Part shown: positions 8,560 to 47,150 of the stretch, one piece after another
Layout of the letters: each line of letters begins with the position of its first letter
Position numbering within the stretch: position 1 is the stretch's first letter
Origin: Bugula neritina
Taxonomy: Eukaryota > Animalia > Bryozoa
Direction: 5' to 3'
NCBI GenBank assembly: GCA_964035545.1
Contig: OZ037765.1
Coordinates: 24,613,504-24,677,503 of the forward strand
Length of the DNA: 64,000 nucleotides
Position numbers and translations under genes: made by a program
The notes under the pieces: generated by a model
Told to the model about the DNA's origin: nothing
What the model saw: only the letters and a program-made list of their open reading frames with translations
The model's database searches: none

Positions 8560-9360
8560 GGACAGTTAATGTTATACTGATTTGATACTCTTAGTGATAT
8601 TATCACTCATAGTCAATGTAATACTGAGTCTGATGGTCAGTAGTATAATTATTACTAATGACAATAGGCATAGCCATACTCTAGTCATACTGATAGTAAT
8701 AGTATTACTAATACTACTACTACTACTAGTATCAAATGTGCTTATGAGCTATCAGTAACTGTAATGACCTCCTAATCATATTCATACCAATAGTGACTCA
8801 GAGTTGATACTCATACTAATACTAAACTACTTCATAGTCATCATCACTTGCCTATGAAACTGAATGTGATAGCCATAGTAGTTACTAGTCACTCATACTG
8901 ATAGTAATAATATTAATGCTGGTAGTGGTACTCATAGTCATACTCATAGTATCAGTCATAGTGATGGTGATCCTCCTATTCATACACTCATAGTCATACA
9001 GATACATTTACAGCTACTGTTGCTGTAACTCACTAACGCCAACGGTAACACTAGTGAGTAGTAAGACTTAAGAGTGACACTGTCACTATGAGTATGAGTA
9101 TGACTATCAATTTAAGACTTAGTCTTAACAACTACAAGTACAAGTGTGACACTGACAGTCATAGTTTTACTGCTGGTGCTACACTTACAGTTACTATTAG
9201 ACTTGGTAGTATTATTATTACTATTAGTATTATCATTACTAGTAGTAGTAGTAGTGGTACTACTAGTACTACGAGTACGTCTACTGAAACTCAAACTGAA
9301 AGTAGAACACTAACACTAACAGTAATTGTAAATTTAAATGTTATAGAAACAGTTTGCGTA
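8560..9360. repeat. Low-complexity 6-bp-periodic (TNA-NNN)n island in the BCAT 5' intron
   Basis: e.g. about 9083-9127 tca cta tga gta tga gta tga cta tca att taa gac tta gtc tta; about 9285-9345 tga aac tca aac tga aag ... taa cac taa cag taa ttg taa att taa atg tta. Confidence 0.85.
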
Positions 9361-9938
9361 TAAACAGCAATGTCATTTTAGGGCTGACGCTCATAATAGA
9401 TTAATATTATAGCCTTAGTTATATCAGTGATCAATAAAATAAATCAAACTTAAGTAAAACAATTAATTTACTAAGTTTTTATTAACTACGCCATTTAGCC
9501 ACGGAAAATTGAAACGAACTATTGTTGTTCTGCACACAGGACTAATCGGGTCCGTTCTATTCGACTTGAATTCGCAACAAACAAGAATGCGTCACCTTGG
9601 TTTATAAGGATCCATACAGTTACGCTATCACTTGTTCATTGTCTTCCTTTTGTAACCAACTATCAAGAGCAAATAACTTTTCAATGTATTATAATCGAAA
9701 TGTGTTGAAATCTAAAAAATTATTAATCTACTATCAATTTTTTCTTCCTACATAGAACAAAATGGTTCTGAGAATGATAATCCTAATAATTCAATAGCAA
9801 TAAATAACATTCTAAAAATGGCAGCAGTCTCCAACTCAGCAATGCAGTGTATTACAATGTAATAACCTGCTTGGTAATATTAAAGTATCATTTGCAGGAT
9901 GCATCTTGTATAAGAATTATTTTCCTGCTAATAGTTGT

Positions 9939-9951
9939 TGACCTTTGACCT
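9939..9951 (-). promoter_or_regulatory. Perfect DR1 nuclear-receptor element (AGGTCA A AGGTCA) upstream of the presumed BCAT first exon
   Basis: + strand TGACCTTTGACCT matches the HNF4/COUP-TF/RXR DR1 consensus exactly; function not shown. Confidence 0.45.
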
Positions 9952-11914
9952 ATTTGGTGGCTTTTCACAGCTGTTTATCAATAGATAGCTAAGTTGGTGG
10001 CTATGGGTGAAACCCCTTTTTAAGTTCTAGGAATAATGATGCAGTTCATTTTAGAGGAAATGTGCTTTTAGACCAATCTAGTAATTAGCCTATAGGATCA
10101 ATTACTGATAACTATGGGAATAAAATTAAGAAAGTATAATCGTTAACTTTTAAAATTTTGTGGTTACATGGTATATGTTTTTTACAAGCAAGAAAATCTA
10201 TAGCAAATAGCAATTTATTATGATCCGAACACAAAGTTTCCAGTAAGTAATGTTTTACGGTTATATGCATGAAATAGCAACATTTGCTGACGGGCAAAAA
10301 GTCAAACATTGTATGCTCAGGTGAACTAAAAGATTTATTAAGGTAATGCACTATATTAAAAGATAGCAACATATTTTTTTGGAAGCTTATAATCAACTGC
10401 ATGCTAAGGATGTAATATACAAGCGCTAGTTTATATCAACATTTCATTAATTGGGCTCAATCTAATCTTATCAAAAGCATTTGTGATATATAGGTACATG
10501 CTTGTTTTCAACTGTTGAGAGTGATTTTGAAAGAACATGAATTGCAGCAAGACATATGGATGGTCATCTTAGAAAGTGCAAGTTTATATTATAGTAGTAT
10601 TCTGCTGATGATTTAATATTGTATACTGCCAAAATGTTAAGATACAATGTCTTTGTTGCAATTTTGGTTTACACATGTGGCCAATATATATATTTTCTGT
10701 GGCTTGCATGCTTCATAGTGCTCCACCAGCAGTTATTAAAGTCTGGAGAAAATAGAGAAGATTTCTCAGTCTCACAATGCGTGTAGGATCCCAGAGAAGC
10801 ACGTTGAAGTAGTCTTCTGCACAAATATGAATTTCTTTTTATTCTGTCATTTTACTTCCAGCTGCAATTTTACTTGTTTTTACAGCAAAACTCATTAGAA
10901 AAAAGAGAAAAGCTATAGAATTGATTTCACTGTCAATCCCAAAAGTTAAACACAAATTCAACCACTTTTGCCTTGTATTTATATATACAACTATAAATCA
11001 TGTAGTAATTGAGATTTCTAAGAGCAAAACTACCTATGATTTATATTGAAATTAATTTATATTGAAATTTATAGAAATAAAATATACATGAATAGCATAT
11101 AGCCTATAATAAACACTAAACATTGATTAGAAGAAGTCAGTAAAACGCATATACTGCACAGTTATAAGAAGTTTATTTTTCCTTAGCTGGAACAGTTATA
11201 TAATACATGTAATTATTATAAGAAAAGGTTTAGACTTTAGACACTAGATATCAAAATCGCAATATACTGTGCAGTAGATAAGGTTAGAACTATGCATTGT
11301 GCAAAACATAGTATTTCAGATACATAATGCTAGCTTATATGCAGTTCTATACTGTATACATCATATTTTATGCACAGCCAAATCCATTAGGTAATGCAAC
11401 CCCCCCCCCCTCCCAAATGTTTGGTGTGTAAAAATTATTATCCAGTGATTCCAGTTCACAGATTTTGTCCTATATTAATATAACTTAGACATGCATTATA
11501 ATTTATACTTTGAATTCCTATTGCATAACACTGAAACATATAATTATGACTAAACTCGTTAATACTTAGCTTTTGTAGTACAAGTTCCTATCTACAACAT
11601 CAAAGCATATTTTATAGTCGTGGAGAAGTGCATTAGGCTATAAGCTATGGCAAAATCCATCTAGGGTATAATATTTGCATGCAGACATTCAATTTCTAAG
11701 TGCAATTCTTAAACATTGAATTTGAAACTTTTAAAAATTTATCTTCAAACTCATAAATTAAAGATGTAAAAGAAAATAATTCATAAAACAAACGTTGCCC
11801 AATTATTTACAGAAGCACGAATTTAGCAGTTCTTTAATGTTGGTGATATATTAACGTTGATACACACACCATATTGGCTGAGTTGTACATCGTTATCGAA
11901 GCGACGGTTTAGGT

Positions 11915-11945
11915 CACTGAACTGAAACTGGGTTATAGTTCAATG
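11915..11945. mobile_element. 31-bp hAT-like mini-insertion (family A)
   Basis: CACTGAACTGAAAC...GTTATAGTTCAATG imperfect TIRs, flanked by a perfect 8-bp TSD GTTTAGGT (11907-11914 and 11946-11953). Confidence 0.75.
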
Positions 11946-11971
11946 GTTTAGGTCATATACCACACTGCGGC

Positions 11972-12007
11972 CAGTGTGGTATATTAAATATTAAATATAC
12001 CACACTG
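11972..12007. mobile_element. 36-bp hAT-like mini-insertion (family B)
   Basis: Perfect 14-bp TIR CAGTGTGGTATATT / AATATACCACACTG with an 8-bp spacer, flanked by a perfect 8-bp TSD ACTGCGGC (11964-11971 and 12008-12015). Confidence 0.75.
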
Positions 12008-12443
12008 ACTGCGGCGAAGTTGATGCTCTCGTAGCTACACGGTAATTGCGAGATGTTAACAAACAAAAACATTCCCAGTACCCCTGCATCTGGGCTCTTT
12101 CGATCAACGCAACCGCTGATATGTTTTGATAATTATTTTGATGATGCAAGACGGTAAAACAATTTAAATTAAAAGTTTACTTAGGCTATAAATATACAAC
12201 GCTTTTATAAACCTAAATACACAACAATTTTGTATAAGTTGATCTGTTAAAGACACACAGAGCAAGATTAGCCCTCAGTTGGAGATTCAGATTGTCATTG
12301 TCATTTGTGATACTCATACTGATACTGGTAGTGATAGTCCCACTTGCGCTCACTCTCAGTTGGTGTAGCACTCACTGTGAGTGTGGCTTGACAACATTTT
12401 ATGCTCAAAATCCAAAAACATTGAACTATTTACACCAATCGCA

Positions 12444-14905
12444 ATGGAGTTCCGTGGGCTCATATTCATATTATTGCTAGAAAGCTTTTTCTTTATCAAC
12501 TGTGAAGCCCAAGCCCCTGTATCGGAACCTTTGAGTTTGACTACAGCTGTTGCTCTTGGAACTCCGACTCGCACTTCTAATTCTGGTAATGTGTCTTTGA
12601 TATCAGCAGATGAACACAAAACTGAAGCAGTGAGTGTTCGCTTGAACTCTGAATCTTCTGTAAGCTCTTGTGATAAGTTGAAGGTAAGCTAAGGCTAATG
12701 CTATGTCAGTATGTGTTGGGTATCGAGTAATCGACATCTTACTCTTAGTCTTACGACGTACTTGTTTCACTAACTTGAGTTTTGATGTATTCCAGCAAGT
12801 GAGCATACTGATACACGTAGTTTTTTTACCACATCGGTATTATTATTTATAATACTATTAGTATTGTTACTACTATGAACAAATATTTTAGCGTGGTTAT
12901 AATTTTAACTTCACGTTCAACTAGTACACTATTTTAAGTTTTTATTCATGATTAAAATACTAATATGCTTATAGGGCTGATCATTTTTATATAATATTAA
13001 TAATGATTATTATAAATATAACACAGTTAAACTTAATGTGATTGTGGGTGAAGGATTATCATTACTGTAAATGGTAAATGGTTAAGATTAATTATTTCTA
13101 TGCTAAAAGTAAAAGTTAAAGCTTAAGTCTAGGAAACACTGACAAGAAATTCTTTAACTTACTTTACGTGTCAACTTCAAATCGATGTTTATGTAATTAA
13201 TCAAGGGTACAACTTCAAAGATGGAGTGTGTGCACTTCGAGGCAAAAGGGAGTGAAGAATTTCAAAAAATAAAATTTTAAATTTTATGTTGTTTTGCTAA
13301 ATAAGGTATGCAGATTATTCTGTTGTATATATTCTCATTTAATTTTAGGTTTCTTCATATACTGTATGCTCATCAGGCAATCGGATGTACCAGCTACTTA
13401 AATATGATGTTAATCAAGAGAATATTCTTTCAGAGTGTTATAAAGGTAATTATTCCCTACAATTTTACAATTGTTTGTATGCGTCACATTTTATTACATA
13501 TAACCTTATAAAAATGAATTCACATATCTCTATAGGCATCATAGTTTGTCAATTATGTTATAAATATTAAATTTGTTATGTCAAACCAATTTTCTTTCTT
13601 TCTGCTTTCAACAGCCTGCAATGAATCTTATTCCACTGCAAATGACTTGATTTCCTGTGAAGTTGGTTGCCGATCAGGAGTCCAAGATGATGAGCAAAGA
13701 CAAGCAGAGGTATGAAATTAATAAAAGCACATATAAGCAAGTACAGATATTTGGTGCTCATACTTTTCAGCAGTGCTGAAGGTTGGCACGCACAGTGAAG
13801 ATGCAGTGGACTACACACAGCTGAAAACACCAACAAAGCACACTGTTGTTTGTTGCTCTAAATTATTGCAGTCACAGCTGCAAATTGATAAGAAAACTAT
13901 TTCCACACTAAGTGATTACTAAGTAATAGTAAAACAGTTTAACATGTTTATTAAATTGAGTTTATTTATATCACAGGTGATTATTCTAAAATAATTTTCA
14001 ATTTTTCAATCCGATGACCAACATAATCGGTTACTATATTAGCTAATGATATTTGCTGCAATATTGAATATTATCTGTTTAGCCACCTAAGCACTTATGT
14101 GCGCTCAAAATTTATTTTCAGATAATGAACTTCAGATCACAGGCGTATTCTCTGCTTAACGAGGTCAGGATGCAGCAGATGTTCTCCCATTGGATGTTTG
14201 AAATGTTGGCTGGGTTTGACATGTTTAATGATTGGTACGATTCCGAATTGAATACTGAAACTGCTAATACTGTTTCTACTTACATAATCGTAGAGCAAAT
14301 AGATGATCAACTGAAAATTAGCAGCTACCAGTTTGATAGACTCAAACTGACCACGGATTTTTCAACTGGCACGCCAGATGGTAAATTTATTTTCAGTATA
14401 TTTTATACTATATCATTTAATTGTAATAAAATCTGCAGCTGGTTTATGTTTTGGGCACTACTTGGTATACTTGCATTATTTTAGAAGTTGGACCAGTGAA
14501 TCCATATGTGGAATCAAAGAATAAGAAATATGAATCTTGTTACTCTGCAATCAGTTACCCGCGGTTGATTGTCTGCCTGCTTCTAATGAGTTCAGGTGTA
14601 TTCCTAGTGTGGCTAATCTGTAGCACTGTGAAAACTGCACCCAAACAGCGTTTGAGACCAGAGAGTCTCTCTCAGGTATTTGTGAACATGATAGAGGCTA
14701 AATTGCTCGTCAGTCATATGTTGCTGAGCAGAATTGATTGTAAACTAATTGCCATCATTTTATTGTTCAGCTGTTCTTTTGGTTGCAGGAGGAGTTGGAA
14801 GACAAAAAGATCTTGTTGAAAGTGATGGTTGCTAAGAATTCTCTTGGACCTGTCCCAGTTCATTCCAAGAAATCACCTGAAGATGATAAAATGCTTCTAG
14901 CTTAA
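12444..14905 (+). CDS. TMEM59: TMEM59/TMEM59L (BSMAP) family type I membrane protein
   Basis: Exons about 12444-12683, 13349-13445, 13615-13709, 14122-14380, 14485-14675, 14789-14905. Signal peptide; 'ECYKACNESYS...SCEVGC' Cys pattern; 'STYIIVEQIDDQLKISSYQ'; TM followed by 'WLICSTVKTAPKQ...ESLS', matching TMEM59 (WICCATVATAVEQ...EKLS). Confidence 0.8.
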
Positions 14906-15290
14906 CTTATTCTGCAGCTGAAAATGACTTCATTTGTGTAATAGTTATCGTTATTATTTTTGTGCAAATCATTGTGATAAGTATGAAGAAGCACCAGTCT
15001 TGGAGTTGATAAAAGTATCAAGCAAAGATATATAATTTATTGTATGTTGCAAATTTTGTCTTGCATAGCTAACATGGATTTGTTTTGTCAAATTAAATTC
15101 TCAGAGTAGCCTATGTTTACACTTTTAGTTTTAGAGGTGATATATAACTAACTAACCATTCCATTTCAACTTCTTTTCATATTCTATACCAACATCATAA
15201 ATGTGTCACACCCTTTCAATGATAATTTATATATCTCTTATGTCTTATACTATCACAAGTATAATGCGGTGAATGCATAATCATAATTGT

Positions 15291-17379: not shown

Positions 17380-17599
17380 AACATCTCTTTAATGATTAAT
17401 ATTCAATCAACCTAAAAGTAAAACATAAATAATAAAATATATAAACAAACCAGTAAGCTTTTTGAAATTAATTGAACCAAAATATGTTGAGAACAAGTTT
17501 GTCCTTAAAATCCATAATAGGTTTCTGGCTTACTTTTAACCAAATGGAGTTTGTTTCCACTAAACTCACGAATTCTTAACAATCAGCCCAATCCAGATT

Positions 17600-18030
17600 T
17601 TTAACTTAGTGTCGCTAAATCTATTAACCTTACTAACTCAAAGTCTAAGTCACTAAGTGAATCAAAATGACGATGAGAATCAGTCATTATCTAACTATTA
17701 GTATTACTACTACTATTAGAATAAATAATAAATATGACTATTACTATTAGTAGTACTATTACTACTAATATTAGTCATTCAATCACAATCACAATCAGAC
17801 CAATCACCAATGACCAATGTCATCAGTTCACTATTGGTATTGGAACGTTGCAGCGACGAAAATCAAAAGAAAGGTTTAAAAAATAAACTATTAAAACTTC
17901 TATAACTTTTGCCTCTACATGGTACAATTGGTATCTAAGCCCAACATAATGGTAGAGGTTGCAACTACGGTTTTGATCGTCACAGTTTAAGTTATGATCA
18001 TGATGATCATAATATTCATAATGATGAGGC
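17600..18030. repeat. TNA-lattice/ACT-rich low-complexity island around the SLX1 5' end
   Basis: tca aaa tga cga tga gaa tca gtc; (TAC/TAT)n; tga tca tga tga tca taa tat tca taa tga. Confidence 0.65.
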
Positions 18031-20184
18031 ATTCAAATGTTGTACAGGACGCATAATACATATTGTAAAATAGGACTCGCTTAGCAGCTCCTACATTTAT
18101 ACGAGTTATCTTCTCTTATGTGAAAAGTCCGCACCTTGCTGCAGAACTGATTTGCAGTACAAACATATAAACCATTCGACATCCTAATCATAAAACTATT
18201 TACGAATATTAAAAAGTGCTTTATACCATAAAACATTTTCTATATTGTAGTATCTATACTTTATCTTCTGAAACACTGTTATACACATATATCATTTGCA
18301 AAGTAGGCTATATAGCCTACTTATAGCTATCAATTAAAAAACAATTTATTATACAGGAATTATCAAACAGTTTTCCAAAAATCTTGCCAAATGAGTTGAG
18401 TTAAAACCTGTTGATTATTATTCTGACTCTTTCCTAAATTTATTGATTGCTCACTTGCCAAGTATTGCTGTGTCATGTATTGATGCATACAAGTTTGTTT
18501 AAAGGCAAAAGCATTGTGAGAGTCTGCTTCAGATGAAAAAGTTGTTATAGACAAACTATATCTTTACCATGCTGCCAACATATGGCTTGTCAACTAAAAC
18601 TGAGGCAGGCAAAGACTTTAATTTTTGTTCAGCATGGGCTCATATTACACAACTACTTGGCATGCATCTGGGTTCAGAACACATTTGCTTCTTTTTGTAG
18701 TATAGTACAACTTCCTGTGCTATCAGAAAAAAAAAACTTTTCGAAAAACTTCCTATTCTATTCTCATCTTACCTCTGCTATGTTTTTAAGCTATTGGTTA
18801 GCCACAATGTGTTATGTTATCTGGCTGCTCCTAATTCATATATAGTGAGTAGATGTAGATTATGCAAAAAAAATTTCCCTGTAGATTTTCTAGCTTACAG
18901 ATATTTTTGACTTTATTTTTGAAAATAGAAACTGCATGTATAGAAATCCTTATATATTTAAATTAGTAAGTTATATATATTTTCACATATGGAAAAATGG
19001 TTCCAGACTTCAGCTAGATTAGCTGTACTTCCTGCATTCCTCAAATATATATTTTTTTGTTCCAATATCAGTTATGGAAACTTTATTAGAAAATAGAACT
19101 TTGAGCAATAAAAACATTTTGCAATGTTTTTTTTCAAGAAGCATCAAAATACAAATTAGCATGACATGATATCTGCAATGCTCTACAAAAAAACCAGCAT
19201 GACTAAAAGTGGCATCAGCATCCACAGCCTTGACTAAATTTGTATAAAGCACAGTTTTTTAGACTCTAAACTTTGATCAACAAACTCAAAAACAATTATG
19301 TACATATTAGTATTGTAGAGCACTTAAAACAGGTTTAAAAAATTTCTATCCATACTATTTTTGAGATGAACTGCTTTAAAGAGAGGACAACTTCCCTTAG
19401 AGAAGTTTGTTGACGAACCCAAGAAGCAGACAACATTTTCACATTACCAAGAGTAAAAATGAGAAGGCATAATAGTGAGCAGCGAGATCACTGATAAAGT
19501 TAATTGGTCAAATTCCTTTGCATTTCAACTGCTATAAATACTTCAGTTTTAATTTTTCATAGCCTATCAACACTAGCATTGTGTGAGGGGAAGCAACAAG
19601 CAGCCATCAAATACTATCAGGAGAAACAACTCTTGATGGCGTATGTATATTGTAAACAACGTATATTCTTGAGTTTTCCCTACAAGTTTTATATAACACA
19701 TTGCTGAAACTTTGTTTATTTTACACGTGCAAATGCAAAACTCAGAATGAGCACCACATTTATTACAATTTCTACAAATAAGCAAGTGCAGAGATTAAAC
19801 ATGAATTAAGTTATATCGATTACCAATACAGCAGTATGTTAACAATCACAACAGTAAGGTGCTGACAATGATGAAAAACAAGTAGCAAAACATACATAAT
19901 AAGTTATCATAAAATACATATTCATTAGGCTTATGTTGTAGTTTATACACAATATTTCAGAAATAATAACTAAGCTACAACAACTAAACCTATTGCCATC
20001 AAAATACACATTGAAGTGGTGACAAATCTAAACAGACTAGAAAGCAGAATTATTCTGCATAAATAAAATATTATTACACCATAAAATATGTTACAAATAA
20101 GTTATAAAATTTGTGTACTAAGTAGTGATATAACTAAGTTTATCCAGTTAATCAACAGCACCAACATTAAGCAGAAGATTGTGG

Positions 20185-28318: not shown

Positions 28319-29089
28319 TTTGCTGATAGATTGTCTGCAATCCTCACTATGGAAGTGACACAATGCTGAAATTGTAAAGAGGCAAGCAATTATTGTTCTT
28401 CAAAGCTATGGAGTAATTTTAATAAGCACCCCAAGTAATACTTATAGAATAACTCTGTGTAAATAAATTATAGCGTCTTGAAATATTTTGCAAATTTCAG
28501 AGTAAAATAATTGTTTTTAAAAATAGTAGTGCATTATTTTTTCCTATTTAAAATTTTAATTATGAACTTTTAACATAATCTTTTTAAAAAATTGAGCTTT
28601 AGACTCACCAAAATAATGAAAAATATGCAAGTAACATATGATGTACAGCTATTTCCAGAAGCTCGCATTTCATTTTAATATTGTAAAATTTTATATAAGA
28701 TACAATGGAGAAACATTTTAACTTATGCAATATTCTCATTTGCTGAGTTCTAAATTGTTTATTAGAAAGTTGTAAGAAAATTAAGAAGAGGTAGCTGCAT
28801 TCAATTAACAAATAAATACAAGATTTAATACTACGAGGAGTCTATAATATTGTAATGCCTACATATACTAATCGCTTAAAACAATATTGAGACATTTTTA
28901 TATAATCAAAAGTAAAACCTTAACTGTACACGTTTTAATTGATCAAATAGGGATAAGTTTTATTCCGATAATATACATGTAGACTATATCGAAAAATAGA
29001 GCCTGTGCTGCCAAAAGTAAGAAAATGTGAATACAGAGTCAAAGAAATATCACGTTGTGAATGTTTAATATCCAACAGAATAATTATGA

Positions 29090-31260
29090 CTCACTCAATA
29101 GTCAATGCTATTAATATAATAATAATAGTAATACTAATACTAATAATAGTAATACTAATACTAATAATAGTAATACTAATAGTAATAATAGTAATACTTA
29201 TACTAATAATAGTAATACTAATACTAATAATAGTAATACTAATACTAATAATAGTAATACTAATACTAATAATAGTAATACTAATACTAATAATAGTAAT
29301 ACTAATACTAATAATAGTAATACTAATAATAGTAATACTAATAATAGTAATACTAATATTATTAATACTAATATTAGTAATACTAATATTAGTAATACTA
29401 ATATTAGTAGTTTTGGTGGTGGTGGTGGTGGTGATGGTGGTGGTGGTGATGGTGGTGATGGTGATGATGGTGGTGATAGTGGTGGTGGTGATGATGGTGG
29501 TGATAGTGGTGGTGGTGATGATGGTGGTGGTGATGATGATGATGGTGGTGGTGGTGATAGTAGCATTGAACTATAACGTTATAGTTTTAGTTCAGTGAGT
29601 GGCAGTAGTAATAGTAATATTATACGTAGTAGTATTAATTTAGTAGTATTGTACTAATAGTTAATGTTATAGTTATATAGGAAAGTTATACCAAGTTCAA
29701 TAATTATACTAAGTTTATAACATTGATAATTATGATGTTTATCAGTTTGAATTTAACTTAATAAATTAGAATTATCATTATGATCATCTTAATTTTATAA
29801 TGCATGCTACAATAATTGTAATATAACACCTATAATATGAATATCTTAATATATCCTAATATTCATAATTACCATAATCATAGAATCAGGTCATAGTGAT
29901 AGTCAAACACTAATAAACTAAGACAGCAGTAATACTCATACTGATAGTGATAACTGACAAGTTGTACTCATATCGATAGTACTAGTAGCAGTATAAATAT
30001 GAGTATCGTACTAATCACTTATTACTGATGAGATTTACTTTTAGTGATGGCCATACTGATATTGAAACTGAATCAATATTATTATAGTGATAGTCATACT
30101 CGTAGAAAATACTGAATAGTAATATTCATAATTATAAACACTTAGACTTAGAGTTAGTCTAAGACTTACACTTACAGAACTTATTGCTAGTAGTAGTTTT
30201 ACTGTGTCTGTTAGGTATAGTGATTGTTAGACGCTAGTGTAAGTTTTGCACCTACTGTTACACTTACTCACTTAGTCTTGCTTAAATTAAAGCTAGTGAC
30301 TGTGAGTTACCACTATCAAATTCACTAAGTCTAACCTAGTAACTTTAGAGCTTAAGCAGTAAGTACGACCAAATCAAAATGAGTAAGACTAGGTGCACCG
30401 TGAAGTGTACGTGTTACACTTACTCACTTAGTCTTAGACTTAGTGATGGCGAATATGATACTCATGCTTGGTACAGCAGCTGTAAGTTTAAGAATAACTG
30501 ACTTCTGAGTAAGTCAAAGTAACTGTCTAACTGACTAGCTCTAACTCTAAGAGTCAGACTCAGACTGATACTACTACTATTACTAATAGTAATAGCAATA
30601 CTTATACTAATACTAATAGTAATACTAATAGTAATAATACTAATACTAATAGTAATACTATAAGTATATGATACTGATGGTAATAGCTACTGATGGTAAT
30701 AGTAATACTTAGTCCCACACTAACAGTAACAGTAATACTAATATTAATAACACACTCACAGTGTAACTGTAAGTGTTATTAACTCTAACAGTATAACTAT
30801 AAGTATTCATAATAGTATTACTATTATTAGTATTACTATTAGTATTACTATTACATTTACTGCATTAGCCTTAGGCTTAGTATTACATTTACTCAATTAC
30901 TGTCTTAGATTTAGTAACATTAATTAATACTAATAGCATAGTCATACCAATAATATTGATAATACTAATACTAATACTAGTAATAGCAATACTAATACTA
31001 ATATTAATAGTAATACTAATACTAATAGTAATAATAATACAATACTAAGACTAAGAGTAAGTTATTCTAAAGTCTAGGTCAAAGTGAGTAACTAACTGTA
31101 AGACTAACAGTAAGTGTAACAGTAACTGTAAAAATTGGTTATACTTCTAGTTATACCTATACTTACACTTACAGTTACTACGTTACTTATGATAGGAATA
31201 ATACTAATAGTGAGTAACTAAAGTCAAAGCTGAGAGTTAACGTGATAGTACTTTTAAACA
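29090..31260. repeat. Large TNA-lattice island in the ULK 5' region, including (TAATAC/TAATAG)n and (GGT/GAT)n tracts
   Basis: 29115-29410 TAA-TAC/TAG hexamers; 29415-29560 GGT/GAT triplets; about 30143-30178 tta gac tta gag tta gtc taa gac tta cac tta cag; 24-bp direct repeat TGTTACACTTACTCACTTAGTCTT at about 30256 and 30413. Confidence 0.9.
29564..29597. mobile_element. 34-bp family-A mini-element (no recognisable TSD)
   Basis: CATTGAACTATAACGTTATAGTTTTAGTTCAGTG has the same ends as the 11915 and 25175 copies; its left flank is a microsatellite. Confidence 0.55.
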
Positions 31261-31524: not shown

Positions 31525-32509
31525 ATTGAAAAAGCTGAGCAGAAAATGCACCCATGCTTTGAAATCTGTTCATAGTATATTATTTGAACTTTGTGCCATT
31601 GCTTATAATATAGTATGTAACAGCTAATAGCTCATTTTGCACATTCTATACTTATGCCATTGTTTGTGCATTTTTAATGTTTCTTAGCATTCAGACTTCA
31701 AACAGTAATGAAGTTGCAAGGAAAAAATTAAGAAACTACTATTGGCCATAAAATATAGGTGTGCGTTATATAACTACTATTGTCGGGTAGTTGATTCAAT
31801 ATGAATATAACCAGCACACAAAATAGATTTGAAAAAGAATATTTGCATGGTGCAATATAAATTTGTAAATTATGTAGTAAAAATATATCAAGGGTTTCTT
31901 CTATAAAAAAAAGCAGAGCAAGATACTTCAGAGATATCTTAAATAGCTTTCCAAAAGCTGGTTGCAAAATTAGGACTGGTCTCAATACTGATAGTAAAGA
32001 TATGGTTGCATCTAAAACAAAATGTTGTAAGCCTATAGAAATAATGATAATAACATGTAACACTTAATATTATAAGAATCATGTATTACTTTTTACTATT
32101 AGTAGTATTATCAACAGATCAATTGGAAACCACGCAGAAATCAGTAACACCTAAGTGAGGATTTGTTTGCAAACCTGCAAATTTCATAGATCAGGGTCAT
32201 AGCGTATAAAACTTTATTTCAGCTTTTGAGTAATTTCTTGTACAGTTACAAGCGGTACGGGAGGAATAACTCCAGTGAATATGCACAGCCATTGCGTTGC
32301 ACGTTGTCCATGTGCCGTGTTCGAATGCCTTAGAATTTGAATTATGTGCGCGACAAAATGAAAATGACTCTTGAAGCTTCAAAACTTGTTAAAATTTTAA
32401 CTTAAAGTAGTTTGATTAAAATAGACACTTGTCTGCTGGCAGAAGGATTAACTTCAAAATTATTATCATCATTATGAGATAATTATCACAAGTAGTTTAA
32501 CGTAATTTT

Positions 32510-33210
32510 CGTTAAAGTTTTACTTATACTATAAAGTATAAGTAGTATACGTATAACTATAAGTTATAGTTATACTTATACTACTTATACTTTATAGTTA
32601 TACTTATAGTTATAGTTATTGTTAAACTTAATGTTAATCATGATATTGATAATGATTATCATATTCATTATGATTATCATTATGATTATGATTATTAATT
32701 ACCATTATCATTATGATTAATATTCTGATTATCATTATGATATTATTATTAACAATAACAATAACATACAGTTACTGTTAGTGTTACTGTTACACTTACT
32801 GTTAGTGTTACTGTTACTGTTAGTGTTACACTTACGTTACTGTTAGTGTTAGTGTTTTACTTGCTCTTAGACTTAGACTTACAGTTAGTGTTACTGATAG
32901 TGATACTGATACTCTTACTCTTAGTCTTGGTCTTAGTAACTGTCTTAGTCTTACTGTTACTGTTAGTGTTATTGTTGGACGCAGGACATAGTGAATGTGA
33001 TACTCATACTGATACTCACTCTGACTCTCACTGTTACTGTACTGCTATTGTTACTGTTAGACTTAGAGTTACTGTTAGACTTAGTCATAGTGTTACTTAT
33101 CTTATTCAGTTATTGAATATTATTATTATTGATATTCATGTTGACCATGACATTGATCATGGCCCAGGGTCTTAATCTTATCACACTGAATCACTGCCTT
33201 AGACTTATGT
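32510..33210. repeat. TNA-lattice island in the AKAP1 5' region
   Basis: tga tat tga taa tga tta tca tat tca tta tga; tta ctg tta gtg tta ctg tta cac tta ctg; tga tac tca tac tga tac tca ctc tga ctc tca ctg tta ctg. Confidence 0.9.
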
Positions 33211-33333
33211 CTTGCAAAACTAAGGGTTTATGATAAATATGTGCATTATATCGTTCAGAATGAAAGCTTGTGTGTCGGTGATTTTAGGTCCTCATTGACG
33301 ATTTTCTCTAGAGATTTCATCGTATTTTGAAAA

Positions 33334-36300
33334 ATGAGTGACTTGACTCAGAAAGTTAAAGTAATCGTGGGGTTATGTGGCACCCTTGTCACTGCATATA
33401 TTTCTTATGTGATTGTCAAGGCACTATCGAATCGGCGGTCTGTAAAGCATAGTGAGGCACATCCTAAAGGTGAGCAAGTTGAAGAGGAATTAGCAAAAAC
33501 TGAGTCTGTACTTGACACATTGGATTCTTCCTCTGCTAATGACCAAAAGCTTACAAATTCAAGTGAACCTTTGAGTTTGGGTGTAAAAAACTCACCTGAG
33601 CAGCCTGATACTGCAATAACGGTGCCATCAACTGGAAGTACATATAAAAATAATGACGATTCTGTAAGGCCTGCAATTGAAGAATTTGTCAGTTGCAGCA
33701 ATGTTTCTACTTGTGCCTCTCCAGCTGTTGCAGAAAACTTATCGTCAGAAAGTGATGCTAATACGTCTTCAAATGTGCCGAAAAGCCTGTCTACAACTGC
33801 AAAACCATCTTTAACTGATGCTACTAATGACTCAGCTCTTAACAATGATGATAATGCATCTCCAGTTGTTTCAGATGAGTCGCCATTGGTTGTTGCAGAA
33901 AGTTCGTCTCTGTGCACTGGAAAAGATCCATCTCCTATTAGTAGCATGCAGATAGATTTAGTAAAAGATTCATCTCTATGTATTTCGGAAGGTTCAGGTG
34001 TAAATATTGTTGAATCTTCATGTATCCTAGAAGAAAGAGCTTCAAATACTGATGCTTGTCACATAGATTTACCTGTTGGCAGTGATCAAAATGAAGAGAA
34101 TAAGAACAAATCCCCATTAGAAGTAGTTGAAGATTTCATAAATCCCACATCCGTTAGTGAGTCTTTTAAAAGCATTTCATCACCTAATGAAATTAACTGT
34201 ATTGAAGAAATTGTTCATGAAGAGCTATTGGTGGCTGGAAAAGCAACTCCATTAGAGGCATGCATCTCAACACAGCCTATTGATAATATTTTGGATAGAG
34301 GTGATAACAGTTCTTTGCTGAACAAATCATATGATTTAAATGAAGGTGCACCTTCTTCAGCAACCAATGGTGTCTGTGAACCTGAGCTTGCACATGTTTT
34401 TTCGACTACATCAGAGAAAGAGATGAAGGAAAACAGTGAATGCAACGGAATCCCTGTGTGTAGTGTTCCTGTTTCGCCAAATGCTGTTAAAAATGTGTGC
34501 TCTGTGTTGAGTGAATCACAAGGTAGTGGTTTGAGTGAGGTTAATGGATGCACCACAGCCGACTCTGGAATAAGCCAATGTCTTCCTCATAATAGCAATT
34601 TGGATACAGCGGTCACCAACTCTAAGGTACAAATTCTTTAAATATTCCCTCATATAAAAACTTACAAAAAATTTAATAAACAACTAAAATTGATACTGTC
34701 TATTAAATTTTGTGTATTACTATTTGTCAAAAAGAGATGTAATTTCAGAAATTTTAAAGTAGTTGCCAATAGTAAGTATGCAAGTTGTAAAGCAATTTAT
34801 GCTTGCTTTTTCAATGCAGTTTATGAAAAGGTATGTGGCAAGATTTCTTTTGAACATGATGATCTGTTTTAGTCTTATTTTAAATTTTTTTCTGTAGGAT
34901 TCTACAGAAGCTACAATACACACATTCTTGTTGCCAGAAACTCTGTGTGGGTTGTTTATTGGAAAATCTGGTCGAAATATTTCAGCTCTTAAACAAGAAA
35001 CTAATACGAATGTCAAAGTTGGGCGATCTACTGTATTTTCAAACTTCAGATATTGCACAGTAGAAGGTTAGTACTGTTATCAGAATTACGATTTTTTAGA
35101 ATTCATGTTTTATGAATCTGTTTCCTCAAATGGCATATAGTTGGAACAGCATTTTATGACTTGTGCATTTTTTTGTTAAAACAGGATCGCAAGAAAACAT
35201 TGAAAAGGCCTTGGAAATGGTCAGGAAAAAATATCCCAATGTGAACACTACTCACGTTACTGAAATACTGAGCCGACAAGCAATACCCGAGGGCATCACA
35301 CTTTCTACTGACAGAATGCAGGTAGTGTCATTTTGTAATATTTCAAAGAGTTTGTTTAGTTTTGATTATTAAAGTATTACAAAAATTGAGTTGCAGTTAA
35401 AAAGTTATCATTACCCCAAAACTAGCAAATGCCTTCATTCTGCTTGCAAAGCTTTATATGTATTTGAAATAGACTTTTAATGTTGGAAGAAAGCAATGGT
35501 TACTAAGAATGTGTGTTAAAACACATTGTTTCCACCCAAGTAATGAGGGTATTGTGAAACAAATGCAACATGTTGGATGTAATGATCATAAATCTGTTTT
35601 TTCGTAGCTCCATCTGCCAATGGGAGTTCTTTCAGATGTTGGGATCTCCCACATAGTCAATGCTGGTCACATTTTTGTGCAGCAACCCGCTCACCCATCA
35701 TTCAATTCATGGCAGGCATTCAATGACATTATGAACAAGTGCTATACAGATGGCTCCCAGGTTCCACCTTTGCCCCCTAATGTTGAAGGTATACATCATT
35801 GGTTTATAGACCAAATAATCTTAATAAAGAAGTCGTATTGATTGGAAACATCATAGGCTATCAATGCTGATTAACAGTGTTATGCTAAATTGAACTGGGA
35901 CATTTTAATTTCAATTTATTTTCCTGTATATCACTTGCATTGGAAATTAAAAAAACAATACGTTTAAAAATGTTCACTGTTTAAACTTTTTAGTAATTTG
36001 TTAATATAATAATACATAATAGTTACGATGAGTAGGATGTATATTCCTATCTGCTAATAATGATAATTTTCTAAATTCAATCTTTTTCACTTCTCTGCTC
36101 TACAGACAGTGTTCTCTGTGTGGCCCCAATCGAAGGCCAGTGGCACCGGGCTCAGATTATGAGTTTCAGTGAGGATAGGTTGACTTGTGAAGTCAGACTG
36201 ATGGACGTGGGAGGCTACAACAATGTTGCCACTGGGTCATTGAGACAAGTCCGAGAAGATTTTCTCAGGCTGCCTTTTCAGGCTTCAGAATGTTATTTGG

Positions 36301-40100: not shown

Positions 40101-42002
40101 TATTTGAGCAGCAAAGGATAAGAAAACAAAAACCTATGCACTACTTGATTTTAAATTAAACATTATCAATATTGCCATTACTGTGATTTATAGCTATTGG
40201 AAAATAGGAAATATAATAGTGATCTAAACAATTAGTATATTTAATACTTGATAAAGTATCAGCGTATTATCTACCTCGAGAATCATGAAAGACAGCACCA
40301 GTTTTAACCATCACAAATATATCATCATCTGTAACAGCTTTATGGCTACTGCTTGGCAACTGTTAAATATCAATGTAATGTCTGGTTAAGTGTTTAGAAA
40401 TTGAAAAATGCTGTTAAAACATCTCATTTAGCAATAGTCACTCTAAAGTTTAACATACTTATATAAACAAAGAAAATTTTTGAATTTCACTTTTCGGATT
40501 GTAGCATAAAGTGTAATAAAATACAGTGGAAATTAATGAATCATATAAAAAGTAATGTAGTAATATAAAGTAATAGAAAGGTAACAAATAGTAATGAAAC
40601 ATAAAAAACTAAATAATTTGCAAGACTTACGCATATTTGAGAATCGACTTTGTAATGAGTAGCACAGTTCGACACATCTTGAACTTCAGGTGAACAAAAC
40701 GCAGGAACATGGGTTAAAGATATCCCCTCACCATTGTTATAGAGATATGATGCTAGCTAAAACAAAAGAGCTTGTGGTAGTTGATAAATAGCAAAATGAG
40801 AAACAGGCTAAACAGCTTAGTCTAATAACAGCTCTATTACATAATCTATAAATTATTCCTATATACTGGAATTACAGTGTGATCAAATAATTCTAAGTTT
40901 CATATCAGTCGTTGCCAAAGAAAAAACTGTCCTTATACTTTACAACAAAAGAGGAGAAAGCTGAAAATTTTGCAAACCTCATATTTAGCATCAATATTGA
41001 AATCTTCTTTTTCGTCATGATTAGTGCTAGTTACTTGCTTCCAGCTGAGTAAAACACCACACGAAGTATCAGGATACAGCAGTTTGCTATCAGAAAAGTG
41101 GTGAATTATCACCATTTCTGAATCTTGAAGTGCATGCCCTATAAACTGGTTCTCTTTAGAGTCAAACTTCTCCAAAACAGAAAGTAGGTTGTGCAGGTTG
41201 ACTTCTGTATGCTCAGATACGATCAGCAGCCAATCCAGTTTATCCTCAGAATAATGATCTGAGATTCTAGAAAATAATGAGTTTCAATTATTGACTTGAA
41301 TCTTGTGAAGCTTTTTAATCCAAGGTTACTCTTTGTTGAAATAAACTAACTATTGAATGTTTAACACTTTCTCGGTGCAAAGATGCTTTATAGCGTCATC
41401 AATGTTGTGTGCCAGTGCCTTTAGATTTTGTACAGCTCAAGTATTTCGAAATTTTTTCTGAGCCTATAGGTGCAAGAGTTAACAATTTAAGTTCAAAATT
41501 AAAACTGGTGCATTGCAAAACATTCAGTATATGCCTTTAGTTTTGTGATATTTACATGATAAAAATACATATATAATGTCAGGTTTGTTAAAAAAAATTC
41601 AAGTAATGCTTACTCTTTTAACAAAGGTAGAAATGTCCAAGATCCATATAAATCTGGCCAATGCTCTGTAGAAATCACTACTTCAACAGCCAGCCGATCT
41701 CTAACAGATTGTAGTTGACCATATATATAAGATCGGCTCAGTTTGGCAAAGGAGATATGATGGTCTTGGTTTTCGTTGTTAATAACCACCAACAGCTTTT
41801 GCTTCTTCAAGGTCTCACAGTCTAAAATTATGGAAAATAAAATTAACATAATAATACATGGCATCATTACTTTATGTTGACAAATCATAGTCTGAAGTTT
41901 GATTAGTTGCATACTCTGGAAAACATGATAGGCTTAGGTTCCCTACTCACCCGAATTAGTTATTACAGCACAGCACACAAGTGCAGCTAGCAACAATTTC
42001 AT
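37178..42002 (-). CDS. B3GLCT: Beta-1,3-glucosyltransferase (GT31, fringe-like)
   Basis: About 10 exons (41951-42002, 41614-41821, 40977-41267, 40631-40756, 40275-40359, 39714-39827, 38932-39034, 38155-38277, 37643-37788, 37178-37345). Signal peptide, GSWTFLPLL, FIGHALQD...IIHHF, VKTGAVFHDSR, GHCAKF, WLVIVDDDT, LGERYGY...YDYVTGGGG, DAPDDMTIG, ISFHKF and a C-terminal KDEL-like HTEL. Confidence 0.92.
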
Positions 42003-43544
42003 TTTGAATGCAGTCGTCGTTCTTATATGCCCCCAGCCTATCCTGCAAAATTTAGCCAGCAAATTTACATTATGTAAGAGTTTCTTCTTAATGAATGTAC
42101 CAAACTGCTCATATTCAAATTTTTTTATGTAAGCGTTGTAACCTTTCATTACCTGGTGGGAAAACTTATATGAAATACCTAAAATGACTTTGTTACATAA
42201 AAGGGAAAAATTAGTAGAGAAAATTTGATTTAGAACGAAATTGAAAATTATTTGCTTTGCTGAAGTTTACAGCCTTGAAGCAATTGATTTATTTTAATGT
42301 GAAATGACAATTTAAATTTGCAAATTAGGCATTGATTTTATCAAGAGGGTGCAAACTTCATTCTACAACAAACAAGACAACTATCACACTTTCCGATAAA
42401 AAGCTTCATTAGAGTAATTTTAGTTACTCATTTTATTGATTTGAAGTATCATATCATTTACATACATCCAACAAAGAAAGAACTAAGCCATTTAGTGAAA
42501 ATTACATCATAAAACTACATAGGCCTATAACAGAAGATAACTTTTTTACTAGAGTACCCTGCTCTCACATTTCAGCTGTGCCTGTATTTCTAAACAACTA
42601 TACGATAGGTTAAGTTTAATGATTTGAAAGCGCTTACCAAAAGCAAAAAATACAATAGTCACTGAGAATATAAACTGGCAATGAAAAATAATAATATATA
42701 TTTTATATATTCACTCTAGCGCGACACCAAATAATTTGGCCAACAAATAAAATTTCAATCAATTATTTGATTCAATAAAAAATACTGTCAAGCCTGCACA
42801 TCAATTGATACTGGCACAATGTTAGATAATATTAAATAGATTATGCATATTCAAGTTTCACTGAGTAGCAACCATTTTAAACCAACATTATGCTGGAAAG
42901 AAAACCTAGACTTCCAAGCCCTGCTCTGTTAGAACCAAGAATTACTTTATGGAAACTGACTGCCTAAGCAGCATTGAATGATATGAAATTTATTTTATTC
43001 CTTTTTTAAGAATTGGAAAACTCTGGAGCTGAAAGATCTAATGCAGTGATATCTCTGAAACGATTAATACATTTTCTTTCTATGATAAATAAGGAGCATT
43101 TTCCCATTCAAAAATTTATCTTTGTTTAAGTTTCATATTCAAATTATGAACTTTTATTTGATTTCTTGTTAACAATCAGTATCAATAACCTAAATAAATA
43201 TATGTACAACAATAAATTAGAAAAATGTACTTTAAAAAAGTCAAAAATTAAATTTCTTAAATCAAAAACTATAATTTTTCAACTTGGTAAATGCTTTTAT
43301 AAAATTGAAAGCAAATCACGGTTATTCTTTATGTCTCCAGCTTTACAAAAGACAATAATTTTATTAATAACAAAACTTGAGTTGAATTCATTCTAAAATA
43401 ATTACTAGTTAATATAAACTAAGAATAAACAATGCATCATAGTCTCAGCATCAATAAATCACAAACAGTTTTGTTGCCATCTATACACCTTTGTTGTTCT
43501 TAAAAAAAGCTCAGAGAAAAGAAACAAACTTTTCATATATAATT

Positions 43545-44156
43545 TTAAATAGTTGCATATGATTCAGCCATAATAGCCTTAAATATGACTTGAAGTGCTT
43601 CACAAATGCTCACAGCTACATGTTCATGTGGACATTGAAACACATGGCAGCTGAACATGTCTTTGCCAACAATCACTTTCATTGCTAGGTTACTTTTATT
43701 AAAACCGTCATAATACATAACTAATTTAGCAAGTGTGTGCAGTGGTACTCGGAGAACAACATCATCACCGTTATTTCTAGATATTTGAAATCCATGATGA
43801 TCTAATTTTATAAGCACCTCATCAATAGGTAGCGGCTTTAATTTTATTTTACCATCAAGCTGCTCTTCTTCTATTTTTGAAATAAATTGTGTTTCTAGTG
43901 ATTTCCTGTTGCCTGCCACCATCATCAACTTAGATACAGTGCCTAAATAGTACGCAGAAAACTCAAATTGTCTGGTGTGTAAAGAAGAATTAAATTTCAG
44001 ATTTATATTGTCAATACCGAGACTGTTGTCAATTTGATCATTGTGATCTCCTATGTTTACTGCCGTAGAATGAGAATCCGCAGATGAATTTGAAGGTCCA
44101 AGAGATTCTTGGCTAGCATTCAGATTAGTTTTTGATCTTGTACGTTTCCCAAACAT
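43545..44156 (-). CDS. ITGB1BP1: PTB-domain protein, ICAP1 (ITGB1BP1)-like; single coding exon, 203 aa
   Basis: Basic N-terminus MFGKRTRSK, a Ser-rich linker, then a PTB fold 'FEFSAYYLGTVSKL...EEQLDGKI...YYDGFNKSNLAMK...VFQC...AVSICEALQVIF' ending at the C-terminus, as in ICAP1. 'VVLRVPLH' also resembles the CCM2 PTB. Confidence 0.7.
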   Translation of the reverse strand: MFGKRTRSKTNLNASQESLGPSNSSADSHSTAVNIGDHNDQIDNSLGIDNINLKFNSSLHTRQFEFSAYYLGTVSKLMMVAGNRKSLETQFISKIEEEQLDGKIKLKPLPIDEVLIKLDHHGFQISRNNGDDVVLRVPLHTLAKLVMYYDGFNKSNLAMKVIVGKDMFSCHVFQCPHEHVAVSICEALQVIFKAIMAESYATI

Positions 44157-44569
44157 ATCTTTTGCTCCTGGTCTCTCAGTTACAGTCAAACTCAACAACA
44201 GGCTTTTCAACTCGACTGAAAGTTATAAAATCAAAATCAGTTTTGATTTTATCTAATGCTGAAGTGACTATACAATTTTCGATTGACCATGTTGCATTCT
44301 ACAGAGTTTTTCACTTAGCCTTATTGAACAATTGAACAGAATTCATTTTATGGTGCATAAATGTTATTATTTGCTTTCCAGACTATGAGTATCATCATTG
44401 GTAAGTCTAACCAAAAGATACAAATCAAATTAAAAATCAAACTGGCTTACCCAGAATATTATGAATTGCAACGGAGAGCTATTAGTTTTACTTGTAATAT
44501 TTGAGAACATTCCACTCTATTATTCAATTTTGACTTATAACGATAATTTATTAGCATTACATCTATACC

Positions 44570-45790
44570 ATCTATCTAGACTAGTTGACTATAAGTATAA
44601 CTTGTAAGTTACTTTAAGTAATAAGTATAACCTACTGTTAGTGTTAGTCTAACTGCAACTTTGTGATAAAATCATAAAGCTGCATAATATTATAATTAAC
44701 TTTATTAAATCCTTACTTTTAATATTATATCATTACATTATATTATAACATTTGGTATAAGAGCAACATATAAGTATAAGATTAAGTACGACTGCAACTG
44801 CAAAGCTTCAAGTTCCCAAGGTATACAGCTTAACTACTTTTACTTCACTATTTAGTTTTACTATTTACTTTTAGTATGAGCTGAGAAATCATCATCAGAC
44901 TCAGAGTTAAAATGAGTAAACAGTGAGAGAATCAGTACGAGTATGGACTATGAAGTATAATGATTAGTATTACCCTCACTATTAGTATTAGCATTACTAT
45001 AACTATTAGCATAAGCATTATAATTACTATTAGTATAACTCTAAGTATTAGATATTTACATCGTCATTAGTGATTAGACAATTTGAGTTAGTAATATCAA
45101 ATTTAATAGTTAAAGTTTAAAGTTATAGTATCACTATCAGTATTAGTATGATAATCATAATAACAATTATAATGACTAATAATTTATCATAATCAATGTT
45201 ATTATTAGTAACATTGATTAACTATTGAATTGAGTTTAATAATATTGATAATAACGAATAAATTGATTTATATTTATAAGTAAATTATCTGTTATTTTCA
45301 AACTGAAACACAATCATGAATCAATATCATCACCATTACTATAAGTATAAGATTAAGTATAACATCAACTATAACTATAAGTATAAGTATCACTATTAGT
45401 ACTATTAGTATTAGTATTATGAATATTAGTATTAGGCTAATAGCAATTGCAACGGCTAATAGGCTAGTATTAAAGTATAACTTTAACTATAACTATAAGT
45501 ATAGCCATAGCCCAACAGACCGTATAGGCATAGCGGCTAGCCTTAGCCAGTAAGCTAAGGCATCCGCATCCGCATACTCATAGTGATAGCCACACATTCC
45601 GATATTCATATTGATACTGATAGTGAAACTGAATCACACATCAATCATCAATGTGATACTCATACTGACACTCATAGTCATGGTATTAATAATAATACTA
45701 GTAGGTGTAACTGTAACTCAGTAAGATCATGGTGCACCTGTGGTGACCGTGATGAACGCCAGGTTATTGTTATAAGTAGTACCCAGAGTA
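44570..45790. repeat. TNA-lattice island in the ICAP1-like 5' region
   Basis: taa gta taa gat taa gta taa cat ...; tca tat tga tac tga tag tga aac tga; tga tac tca tac tga cac tca tag tca. Confidence 0.85.
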
Positions 45791-46239
45791 AATCGCAATT
45801 GCTAGATAAATGTTAAAAAAAATGCTACGTTTTTATGTGATTAGTCTGCGTCGCCGTCAGTGATGCGTGTACTGAGATCTTCTGGTCTTTAAAGCGAAAG
45901 CGTCTTTCCACGTTGACTCTACCATTTCATTGGATATGAAAGAGGTCAATTAAACTCAATTAATTGGCTAGAGATAGCAACGTGTAAATTTTTTCAAGTC
46001 TCAGATTCTAAAGCATACCGCAGATTTGTTTTGATGCCACTACTAATGATCAATCATACAACAGAATTTTTTATGGCACATTCTAAGAAGCGCAAAGGCT
46101 ACTTATGTGTAGCAGACCGAAAAAGCATCGATATATTTATAATGATGAGGTGTCATATATTGAGGCAGAGCATTATTATCCCTGTCTATGCCACGTATCC
46201 GGTACTTTTTTTTACCATTCTACCATAATTTGAAGTTCC

Positions 46240-47150
46240 ATGACTATAAGTATAAGTGTAGGATAAGCCATATAGTGCATTACACTTGTAGTAATCCGTC
46301 GTAGATATCACAACCACCACCAGTAAGTCGGCTCACTAAAAGTCAGTGTAAGTTGGAAAATATGACCATAGTTTACGGAATCGAACTTTACGTAGTTACT
46401 TCTACTACTACTGCTAGTACTAGTACTAGCAGTACTACTACTAGTAGTAGTACTACTGTACTAGTAGTAGTAGTAGTACTATTACTACTACTACTACTAC
46501 TAGACCTATTACTATTAGTATTACTAGTACTACTACTAGTACTACTATAAGTAGATAAATCATACTCATACTGATACTCATACTAGGCCCTACTTAGGCC
46601 TAGCAGTTCTACTCCTAGAAATCAGAAGATCAACACCGACACGCCATGGAAGATCAGCTTGAACTTGAGTTTGAACTTCAAGTTAATCATGATGATCAAA
46701 ATAAACTGTCTGTCTTTTGTATTATATTTATCTTCAAATTTTGCTAATACTAGTAATACTAATACTAATAGTAATACTCTAGAAATAAGTTCACTGTAGA
46801 GTGTAGTTTAAGTTTAACTTTAAGTTCAATTTGAATTTGAACTTTAAGTTCAAGTTGAACTATTACAGATTTAGATTAATATTACTATTAGTATAAGTAT
46901 AACTAGTACTATAAGTTTACTATAACTAGTACTATAAGTATAAGTATTAGTTTACTATTAGTATTGCATTTACTATAATTATTACTATTATATTTAGTAT
47001 TACTTTCACTTTAGCCTTAAGGTATACGTACTAGTAATAGTAATACTGATAATGATAGTAATACTAATAGTAATATTATCACCATAAGTCTAAAGTAACT
47101 TTAAATTTTACTTTTAAACTTGGCCTTTAAACTTAAACTTGACTCTTTAT
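46240..47150. repeat. TNA-lattice island in the P4HA 5' region
   Basis: about 46808-46861 tta agt tta act tta agt tca att tga att tga act tta agt tca agt tga act; (ACT)n/(AGT)n palindromes at 46400-46550. Confidence 0.9.

Follow-up and report, generated by a model that had tools for sequence, protein, structure and literature searches.

Islands of near-repeating hexamers behind gene starts in Bugula neritina follow a rule of single complement swaps

What are the low-complexity blocks that lie behind gene starts in the bryozoan Bugula neritina? We examined a stretch of 64,000 nucleotides (the window: contig OZ037765.1, positions 24,613,504 to 24,677,503, forward strand) from the public assembly GCA_964035545.1 (tzBugNeri2.1; 216,009,554 bases; PMC11480708), which is also the source of our genome-wide counts. 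An initial annotation, made from the letters of the window, had described blocks with T-N-A (TNA) at every sixth position and proposed that selection or a directed process retains this lattice. We find that these blocks, which we will call islands, are a real, genome-wide sequence class in B. neritina: behind many gene starts, the non-coding DNA consists, for roughly its first kilobase, of six-letter units that nearly repeat. We think it probable that the islands are the accumulated scar of promoter-proximal, template-switch-like mutation, and not a conserved binding lattice.

The annotated blocks, and the three example sequences quoted for them, are all where the initial annotation placed them. 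Identity at lag 6 is 0.535 within the blocks, versus 0.29 elsewhere in the window. Runs of at least four TNA triplets number 68 at lag 6 and 5-10 at lags of 4, 5, 7, or 8, which bears out the annotated periodicity. A caller that uses no motif found 9 segments in the window, every one of them inside the annotated blocks. The same caller found 33 segments per 200 kb of Ras-family loci, as compared to 0 in Markov-2 controls. One 15-letter lattice class occurs 10,967 times in the genome.

What relates one unit to the next? Neighbouring hexamers follow a rule: a self-complementary triplet (ACT/AGT, TCA/TGA, or TAA/TTA) has its central base exchanged for the complement. Exchanges between C and G make up 47% of the single differences between neighbouring hexamers, versus 4% of the substitutions between types (see below) in flanking DNA. 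All of these C/G swaps (115/115) have complementary flanks. The rate of C/G swaps is 0.45 between complementary flanks and 0.03 otherwise; for A/T swaps, the corresponding rates are 0.17 and 0.05. Outside the islands, there is no excess of C/G exchanges in complementary contexts (0.8% versus 0.8%). The swap signature, which is strongest at period 6, appears 100 times in 7.3 kb of island and 5 times in 57 kb outside.

The idea that only the T and A of TNA are retained is not borne out and is too narrow. Relative to base rates, TNA recurs at lag 6 by 2.9-fold, but A[CG]T (4.8-fold), T[CG]A (6.4-fold), C.G (4.7-fold), and G.C (4.5-fold) recur more strongly, and the lag-6 identities of the six positions around TNA are 0.65, 0.48, 0.61, 0.48, 0.53, and 0.52. 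The islands do support a directed, strand-symmetric process at the DNA level, as was proposed: sense strands contain 630 ACT and 632 AGT. We found no sense-strand bias for ACT/AGT or TCA/TGA, and two hexamer classes were weakly biased (from counts that are not independent).

Perfect repeats are avoided among neighbouring units. Pooled over all lattices, the centre behaves as a coin toss (588/588), but within a lattice it is anti-correlated. In lattices with one C/G position, 0.64 of steps are swaps, and two "same" steps in a row have a frequency of only 0.06. In local lattices with two C/G positions, 11% of neighbours show no swap, 73% show one, and 16% show two (n = 177; p = 9e-9 against independence). 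Genome-wide, the corresponding proportions are about 19%, 64%, and 17% of the 10,967 occurrences. Here, perfect dimers account for 2,079 occurrences (19%), and the figure for double swaps is partly estimated: two of the four classes contribute 1,316 (12%), and the other two about 5%, as estimated from a listing.

Could ordinary slippage of hexamers or trimers, followed by independent C/G hypermutation or by quasi-palindrome correction, have produced this? Exact direct repeats are in excess inside islands, and pure (ACT)n and (ATC)n stretches retain memory, as normal microsatellites do. However, single swaps account for about 64-73% of neighbours, and in simulations they never exceeded 50% under slippage with independent swaps, slippage with quasi-palindrome correction, or coin-toss insertion. 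Also, the swap rate is flat with arm length (0.52, 0.49, and 0.50 for arms of 1, 2, and 3), long inverted matches are not in excess, and inverted matches overall are below the null. Slippage plus random mutation was already suspected to be insufficient, and indeed, a simulation of it produced no complement swap (0) and left neighbours perfect. The same degenerate pattern consists of perfect repeats in 78 unrelated metagenome contigs (858 same versus 68 swapped, as compared to 126 versus 219 in Bugula). We consider slippage with such later, independent changes to be largely refuted already, and very improbable.

Where do the islands lie? Seen from the CpG-rich promoter cores, they are on the side that is transcribed. 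Among 20 Ras-family genes that we picked (not a random sample of regions), the 4 kb upstream of the domain start contain an island in 14, and the 4 kb downstream in 3 (Fisher p = 0.001). Many of these loci are laid out as island, CpG core, island. At the one-sided promoters in the window (BCAT, TMEM59, and SLX1), the island is on the gene side only (3/3). This agrees with the annotated location, at 5' ends and on the gene side. CpG outside the blocks is at 0.37 of expectation, which would match a methylated genome, and the short cores that adjoin the blocks are at 1.0-1.4. The islands and cores in the window are as follows (o/e, observed/expected CpG; UTR, untranslated region; ORF, open reading frame):

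8448 to 9365, gene on - strand: island behind the BCAT-like promoter (PF01063 match in a downstream exon)
9400 to 9700: putative CpG-rich promoter core, o/e 1.36, adjoining the BCAT-side island
11850 to 12200: CpG-rich promoter core, o/e 1.15, of the gene labelled TMEM59 (name unconfirmed)
12290 to 12390: short island directly before the ATG at 12444 of the gene labelled TMEM59
12700 to 13150: weak island 3' of the donor at 12684, in the putative first intron of the gene labelled TMEM59
17600 to 18030, - strand: island between the CpG core and the first coding exon of an SLX1-like GIY-YIG gene
18040 to 18250: CpG core of the SLX1-like gene, o/e 1.1
29070 to 31260, - strand: largest island, in the putative 5'-UTR intron of a ULK-like kinase gene (candidate donor 31353, acceptor near 28366)
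32240 to 32400: CpG-rich core, o/e 1.26, between the ULK-like and AKAP1-like genes
32495 to 33210: island 3' of the candidate donor at 32502, upstream of the ORF starting at 33334 (labelled AKAP1, name unconfirmed)
32528 to 32598: near-perfect hairpin inside the AKAP1-side island (35-nt arms, 97% complementary, 1 nt between)
44570 to 45790, - strand: island upstream of a single-exon ICAP1-like ORF (ATG at 44156)
45800 to 46340: shared CpG-rich core, o/e 0.98, of the divergent ICAP1-like/P4HA pair, still alignable to the sibling type (75% identical)
46347 to 47150: island beginning at the candidate donor (46348) of P4HA intron 1 (acceptor 47897, ATG 47904)

The names TMEM59 and AKAP1 are those of the initial annotation, and we presume them here. 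Its statement that the blocks are not ordinary microsatellites holds insofar as neighbouring units are mostly swapped instead of identical, but part of the ULK-side block (29112-29558) is ordinary: a 21-bp minisatellite (29112-29409) and (TGG)n (29414-29558).

Most islands probably occupy the start of the first intron, because candidate donors lie about 100 nt or less from the island edges of P4HA, AKAP1, ULK, and TMEM59, and because the candidate donor of P4HA is retained in the sibling type. The island at 12290-12390 probably lies within a 5' UTR instead, since no acceptor is seen ahead of the ATG at 12444. For the ICAP1-like gene, RNA contigs match the window in one unbroken piece from 43392 to 44468 and continue for only 74-91 letters beyond it, so they end near the island's edge. 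(Letters at the loose ends of reads, which have no reference, were compared by eye.) Exon 1 of this gene was not seen in the RNA contigs, whose cut-off of 85 exceeds the 75% identity of the core, because the RNA runs derive from another, diverged cryptic type.

How do the islands evolve? In a contig from a sibling type, the flanks are 82-89% identical to the window, and there are islands at the same two places, with the same grammar and similar lengths (about 1220 nt in the window versus 1370, and 760 versus 720). But the alignment scores of the orthologous islands (66 and 61) are within the range for unrelated islands, while flanks score 821-1418. The sequence of the islands is wholly replaced between the sibling types. 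This counts against the view that the islands originated as a T-N-A lattice under selection to be read by a binding protein, as does the fit of their statistics to a copying rule and not to a consensus.

The island-free promoter of the B3GLCT-like gene is more diverged between types than internal introns are. Also, the distal half of P4HA intron 1 (47150-47890), which has no lattice, is as unalignable to the sibling as the island is, and it may be a decayed, older island that was pushed outward. Promoter-proximal DNA therefore turns over fast in general. At window position 46392, at an island's edge, the sibling has a 6-nt insertion that resembles a swap duplication with one extra mismatch.

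Closer comparisons are possible at one locus. Contigs from an independent run (X1) cross the ICAP1-side island (1.2 kb) with two transitions, and the flanks have about 27 differences in 4 kb; contigs drop variants. Public data for "Bugula neritina" include a type whose non-coding DNA differs from that of the reference assembly by about 11%, and three RNA runs (X2, X3, and X11) share indels of that type. We also considered an assembly artefact or hidden coding sequence. The islands are of low complexity, and a few stop-free frames cross the blocks. But the independent contigs reproduce an island with 2 differences, an independent sibling sample has islands at the same places, no frame is conserved, and an Rfam search of the islands gave no match. 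These observations refute both, and we find neither credible.

What event would write such sequence? We propose a single recurrent mutation, which would act only in the transcribed non-coding DNA behind active promoters, over about its first kilobase. As suggested by the swap statistics, the unit event would be a[bcdef] to a[bcdef]a'[bcdef], or a 6-nt tandem duplication with one base complemented. It would require that b and f be complementary, and it would be favoured when a is C or G. The simplest and likely chemistry is a one-base snap-back. A free 3' end would fold back, so that f pairs with b across the smallest possible loop of 3 nt; one base (a') would be copied; the fold would open; and bcdef would be copied again. 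The loop of 3, the closing pair of 2, and the 1 copied base would give a period of 6, and because the event would work on either strand, the result would be strand-symmetric. Repeated events, together with deletions and point mutations, would rewrite the region, so that the position of an island would persist while its sequence turns over. The free ends might arise from promoter-proximal, transcription-coupled nicks or breaks, and the enzyme might be Pol theta-like or another translesion or end-joining polymerase. Rarely, the snap-back may run longer, and the 35-bp hairpin at 32528-32598 may be such a case.

The duplication model predicts 2/3 swaps, with 0, 1, or 2 swaps in 17%, 67%, and 17% of cases (19%, 62%, and 19% with deletions). 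For one-C/G lattices, it gives swaps at 0.63-0.67 and two "same" steps in a row at 0.02-0.13, as compared to 0.25 for a coin toss and 1.0 for slippage. When the rule is applied to ordinary intron DNA with the measured substitution spectrum, it produces island-like text with the observed swap statistics and the profile of hairpin loop sizes. It recovers trinucleotide enrichments with r of 0.7-0.78, versus 0.45 for slippage. The statistics fit a 1-nt inverted copy plus a 5-nt direct repeat, although a 1-nt fragment is not provable from one sequence.

Other candidates were tried and rejected. A pure coin toss of the central base holds only if all lattices are pooled, and fails within lattices. 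Copying by long fold-backs would leave an excess of long inverted matches, which is absent. Selection on a W/S pattern or on the minor groove is rejected by the C/G bases in non-complementary flanks, which do not swap. Triplet inversions would replace non-palindromic spacers by their reverse complements, which was seen in 1 of 411 cases. A genome-wide, context-specific C-to-G mutator would act outside islands, where there is no excess. Mutator-like ends were an early guess that we dropped.

Several points weigh against our proposal. Under the simple rule, the 25 hexamers that are most frequent in the real islands reach a vocabulary share of only 31-35%, versus 74% in the real islands, and neither the TA-rich bias nor the 3-bp component is reproduced. 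Some additional preference for sequence, or selection, must therefore be at work. We have not caught an event in the act: the second haplotype path over 44570-45790 contains no C/G exchange and no 6-nt indel. We estimate that a few events would be expected there at a constant rate, so this counter-evidence is weak but real. The same path, from run X1, speaks against very fast ongoing change. Priming by one base pair is physically weak. Only two loci of the Pol A family were found in the genome, with no expansion. The similar lengths of the islands in the two types, despite their turnover, could be caused by selection. Finally, other chemistries at the level of the unit, such as a 5-nt staggered break, fill-in, and one templated base, would yield the same product.

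One such chemistry would be the footprints of a nuclease or transposase that makes 5-nt staggered cuts at X'NNNX near promoters, with fill-in and with hairpin or end processing that add the complemented base. Hairpin-type excision footprints are a parallel for one added complemented base. The product and the period would be the same. Also, the duplicated 5-mers are TA-rich and have complementary ends, mostly T...A or A...T, and odd-centred hairpins occur in the islands. But there are no element ends or remnants in the islands, whose best matches in the genome are 71-83% identical over 50-130 nt, and about 10^5-10^6 cut cycles would be needed. We give this explanation a slim chance.

Alternatively, whatever made the units, the islands might be kept as a co-opted or selected chromatin mark. 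Variants of this idea are positioning of the +1 to +6 nucleosomes, a methylation boundary, enhancement of transcription similar to intron-mediated enhancement, or binding by a protein that tolerates turnover. Such a mark is compatible with the proposed copying, and a secondary or co-opted chromatin role is possible. It would account for the agreement in position and approximate length between the types, the depletion of A/T tracts and GG/CC (AA is at 0.71 and TT at 0.69 of expectation), the enrichment of TA steps, the TA-rich vocabulary that the copy rule alone leaves unexplained, and the few variants in the second haplotype path. On the other hand, no alignable island sequence survives between types, and selection alone would have to purge about ten transitions per C/G exchange at megabases of sites within 10-15% divergence. 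Neither a binding consensus nor a palindromic site predicts exactly one swap per neighbour, with double swaps rare. The window contains at least two genes without an island. Around the ICAP1 orthologue, we found none in Watersipora, Lineus, Capitella, or two further contigs, although this is one gene whose start may lie beyond the 10 kb that we fetched. We judge that the islands are unlikely to be maintained as a mark, though the idea has an appreciable chance of being right.

We see a small chance of something more elaborate: that a dedicated, transcription-linked activity both writes and renews the 6-bp lattice behind active promoters, and that the cell reads it as the mark of its own gene starts. 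As a nucleosome, methylation, or anti-silencing boundary, it would then be a self-renewing mark without conserved sequence.

The two island-free genes are B3GLCT/Fringe-like (40631-42070, - strand) and TMEM198-like (57030-57863, + strand). Each is directly downstream of a same-strand gene that has an island. RNA for the B3GLCT/Fringe-like gene has a 5' end that is contiguous to about 42070. Both genes may have a weak promoter of their own or be co-transcribed. In the shared core at 45800-46340, short motifs are common to both types, namely E-box-like words (CACGT/ACGTG) and the CCAAT-like AATTGG; these are candidate binding sites.

We searched proteins one exon at a time, without joined spliced models. 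Pfam supports the labels BCAT-like, kinase, SLX1-like, ICAP1-like, and TMEM198-like in the window, and, in the sibling contig (L011), P4HA and separately a weak match to Fringe. The closest named relative of the ICAP1-like ORF (43548-44156) is from Watersipora subatra (53%), and a JGI metagenome contig has a 98% match. This ORF is intronless in Bugula, while the genes of Watersipora, Lineus, and Capitella span more than their own coding length, so the gene has probably lost introns in Bugula. At 57712-57852, a 9-bp repeat (15.7 copies, 93%) adds a (W-Y-M/T)n tail to the TMEM198-like ORF, which probably runs beyond the true splice site. Some small unplaced scaffolds (such as C101, C110, C66, C160, C230, and C95) have matches to Ras or ubiquitin-conjugating proteins, few or no introns, and many in-frame TAA/TAG codons; these look like ciliate contamination of the public assembly. 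A search of metagenomes found no related loci; two metagenome contigs labelled as human-gut (L065 and L104) were excluded from all analyses. A search for the PRDM9 SSXRD domain, run without a positive control, was blank.

If our proposal is true, then the islands are an undescribed insertion signature, strong enough to replace the DNA next to thousands of promoters from one sibling species to another. It would have implications for the origin of low-complexity DNA, for mutagenesis linked to transcription or breaks in a clonal animal, and for the way in which regulatory regions stay functional while their sequence turns over. It predicts 6-nt insertions with one complemented base between haplotypes, and in this genome, the islands would mark gene starts by sequence alone. 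Our literature search, which mostly did not reach subscription papers, found no description of this 6-bp lattice, and the islands and their mutation pattern are apparently new to the literature.

How do the islands compare to known systems? They share the 6-bp period, tandem growth, and fast turnover of hexanucleotide microsatellites and cryptic simple sequence. But the units of microsatellites are mostly identical, and interruptions follow the substitution spectrum; in the islands, perfect neighbours are under-represented and the differences are complement swaps, not transitions. Foldback elements and miniature inverted-repeat transposable elements have inverted repeats at their termini, a target duplication, and dispersed copies of high identity, while the islands have no paired termini and match other copies only over short stretches. 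Arrays of conserved transcription-factor sites should align between close relatives, and orthologous islands do not.

The periodic An/Tn clusters (PATCs) of Caenorhabditis elegans have a 10-bp period and an anti-silencing role (PMC4947018). Like the islands, they are pervasive, periodic non-coding DNA that evolves quickly, but the analogy drawn in the initial annotation fails on both period and tracts: the islands have a period of 6 bp (lag-10 identity is 0.253) and are depleted in A/T tracts. Like the islands, the signals of intron-mediated enhancement reach no further than about a kilobase downstream of the start, and they affect expression; the accessible portion of that report mentions no periodic swap grammar (10.1101/083261).

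Snap-back SD-MMEJ (end joining that is microhomology-mediated and synthesis-dependent) is closer. It primes by folding back on very short inverted repeats, with primers of 1-2 nt, including TA/AT and single-base pairings, and is followed by brief synthesis, according to the part of the account available to us (PMC5728401). That part describes induced breaks with varied, mostly deleting outcomes, and no heritable promoter-wide lattice. Dependence on breaks or on Pol theta is a feature of SD-MMEJ; the Bugula islands are known from their sequence. In the four-point model of short-range template switching, a fragment is copied as its reverse complement before synthesis returns to the original template (PMC5453318; PMC7954356), and the model includes cases that make inverted plus direct repeats, as proposed here. 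Those events are rare and were scored only for fragments of at least 10-14 nt outside low-complexity DNA. In Bugula, the fragment would be one base, the geometry would be fixed at a period of 6, and the event would be iterated to fill about 1 kb behind many promoters.

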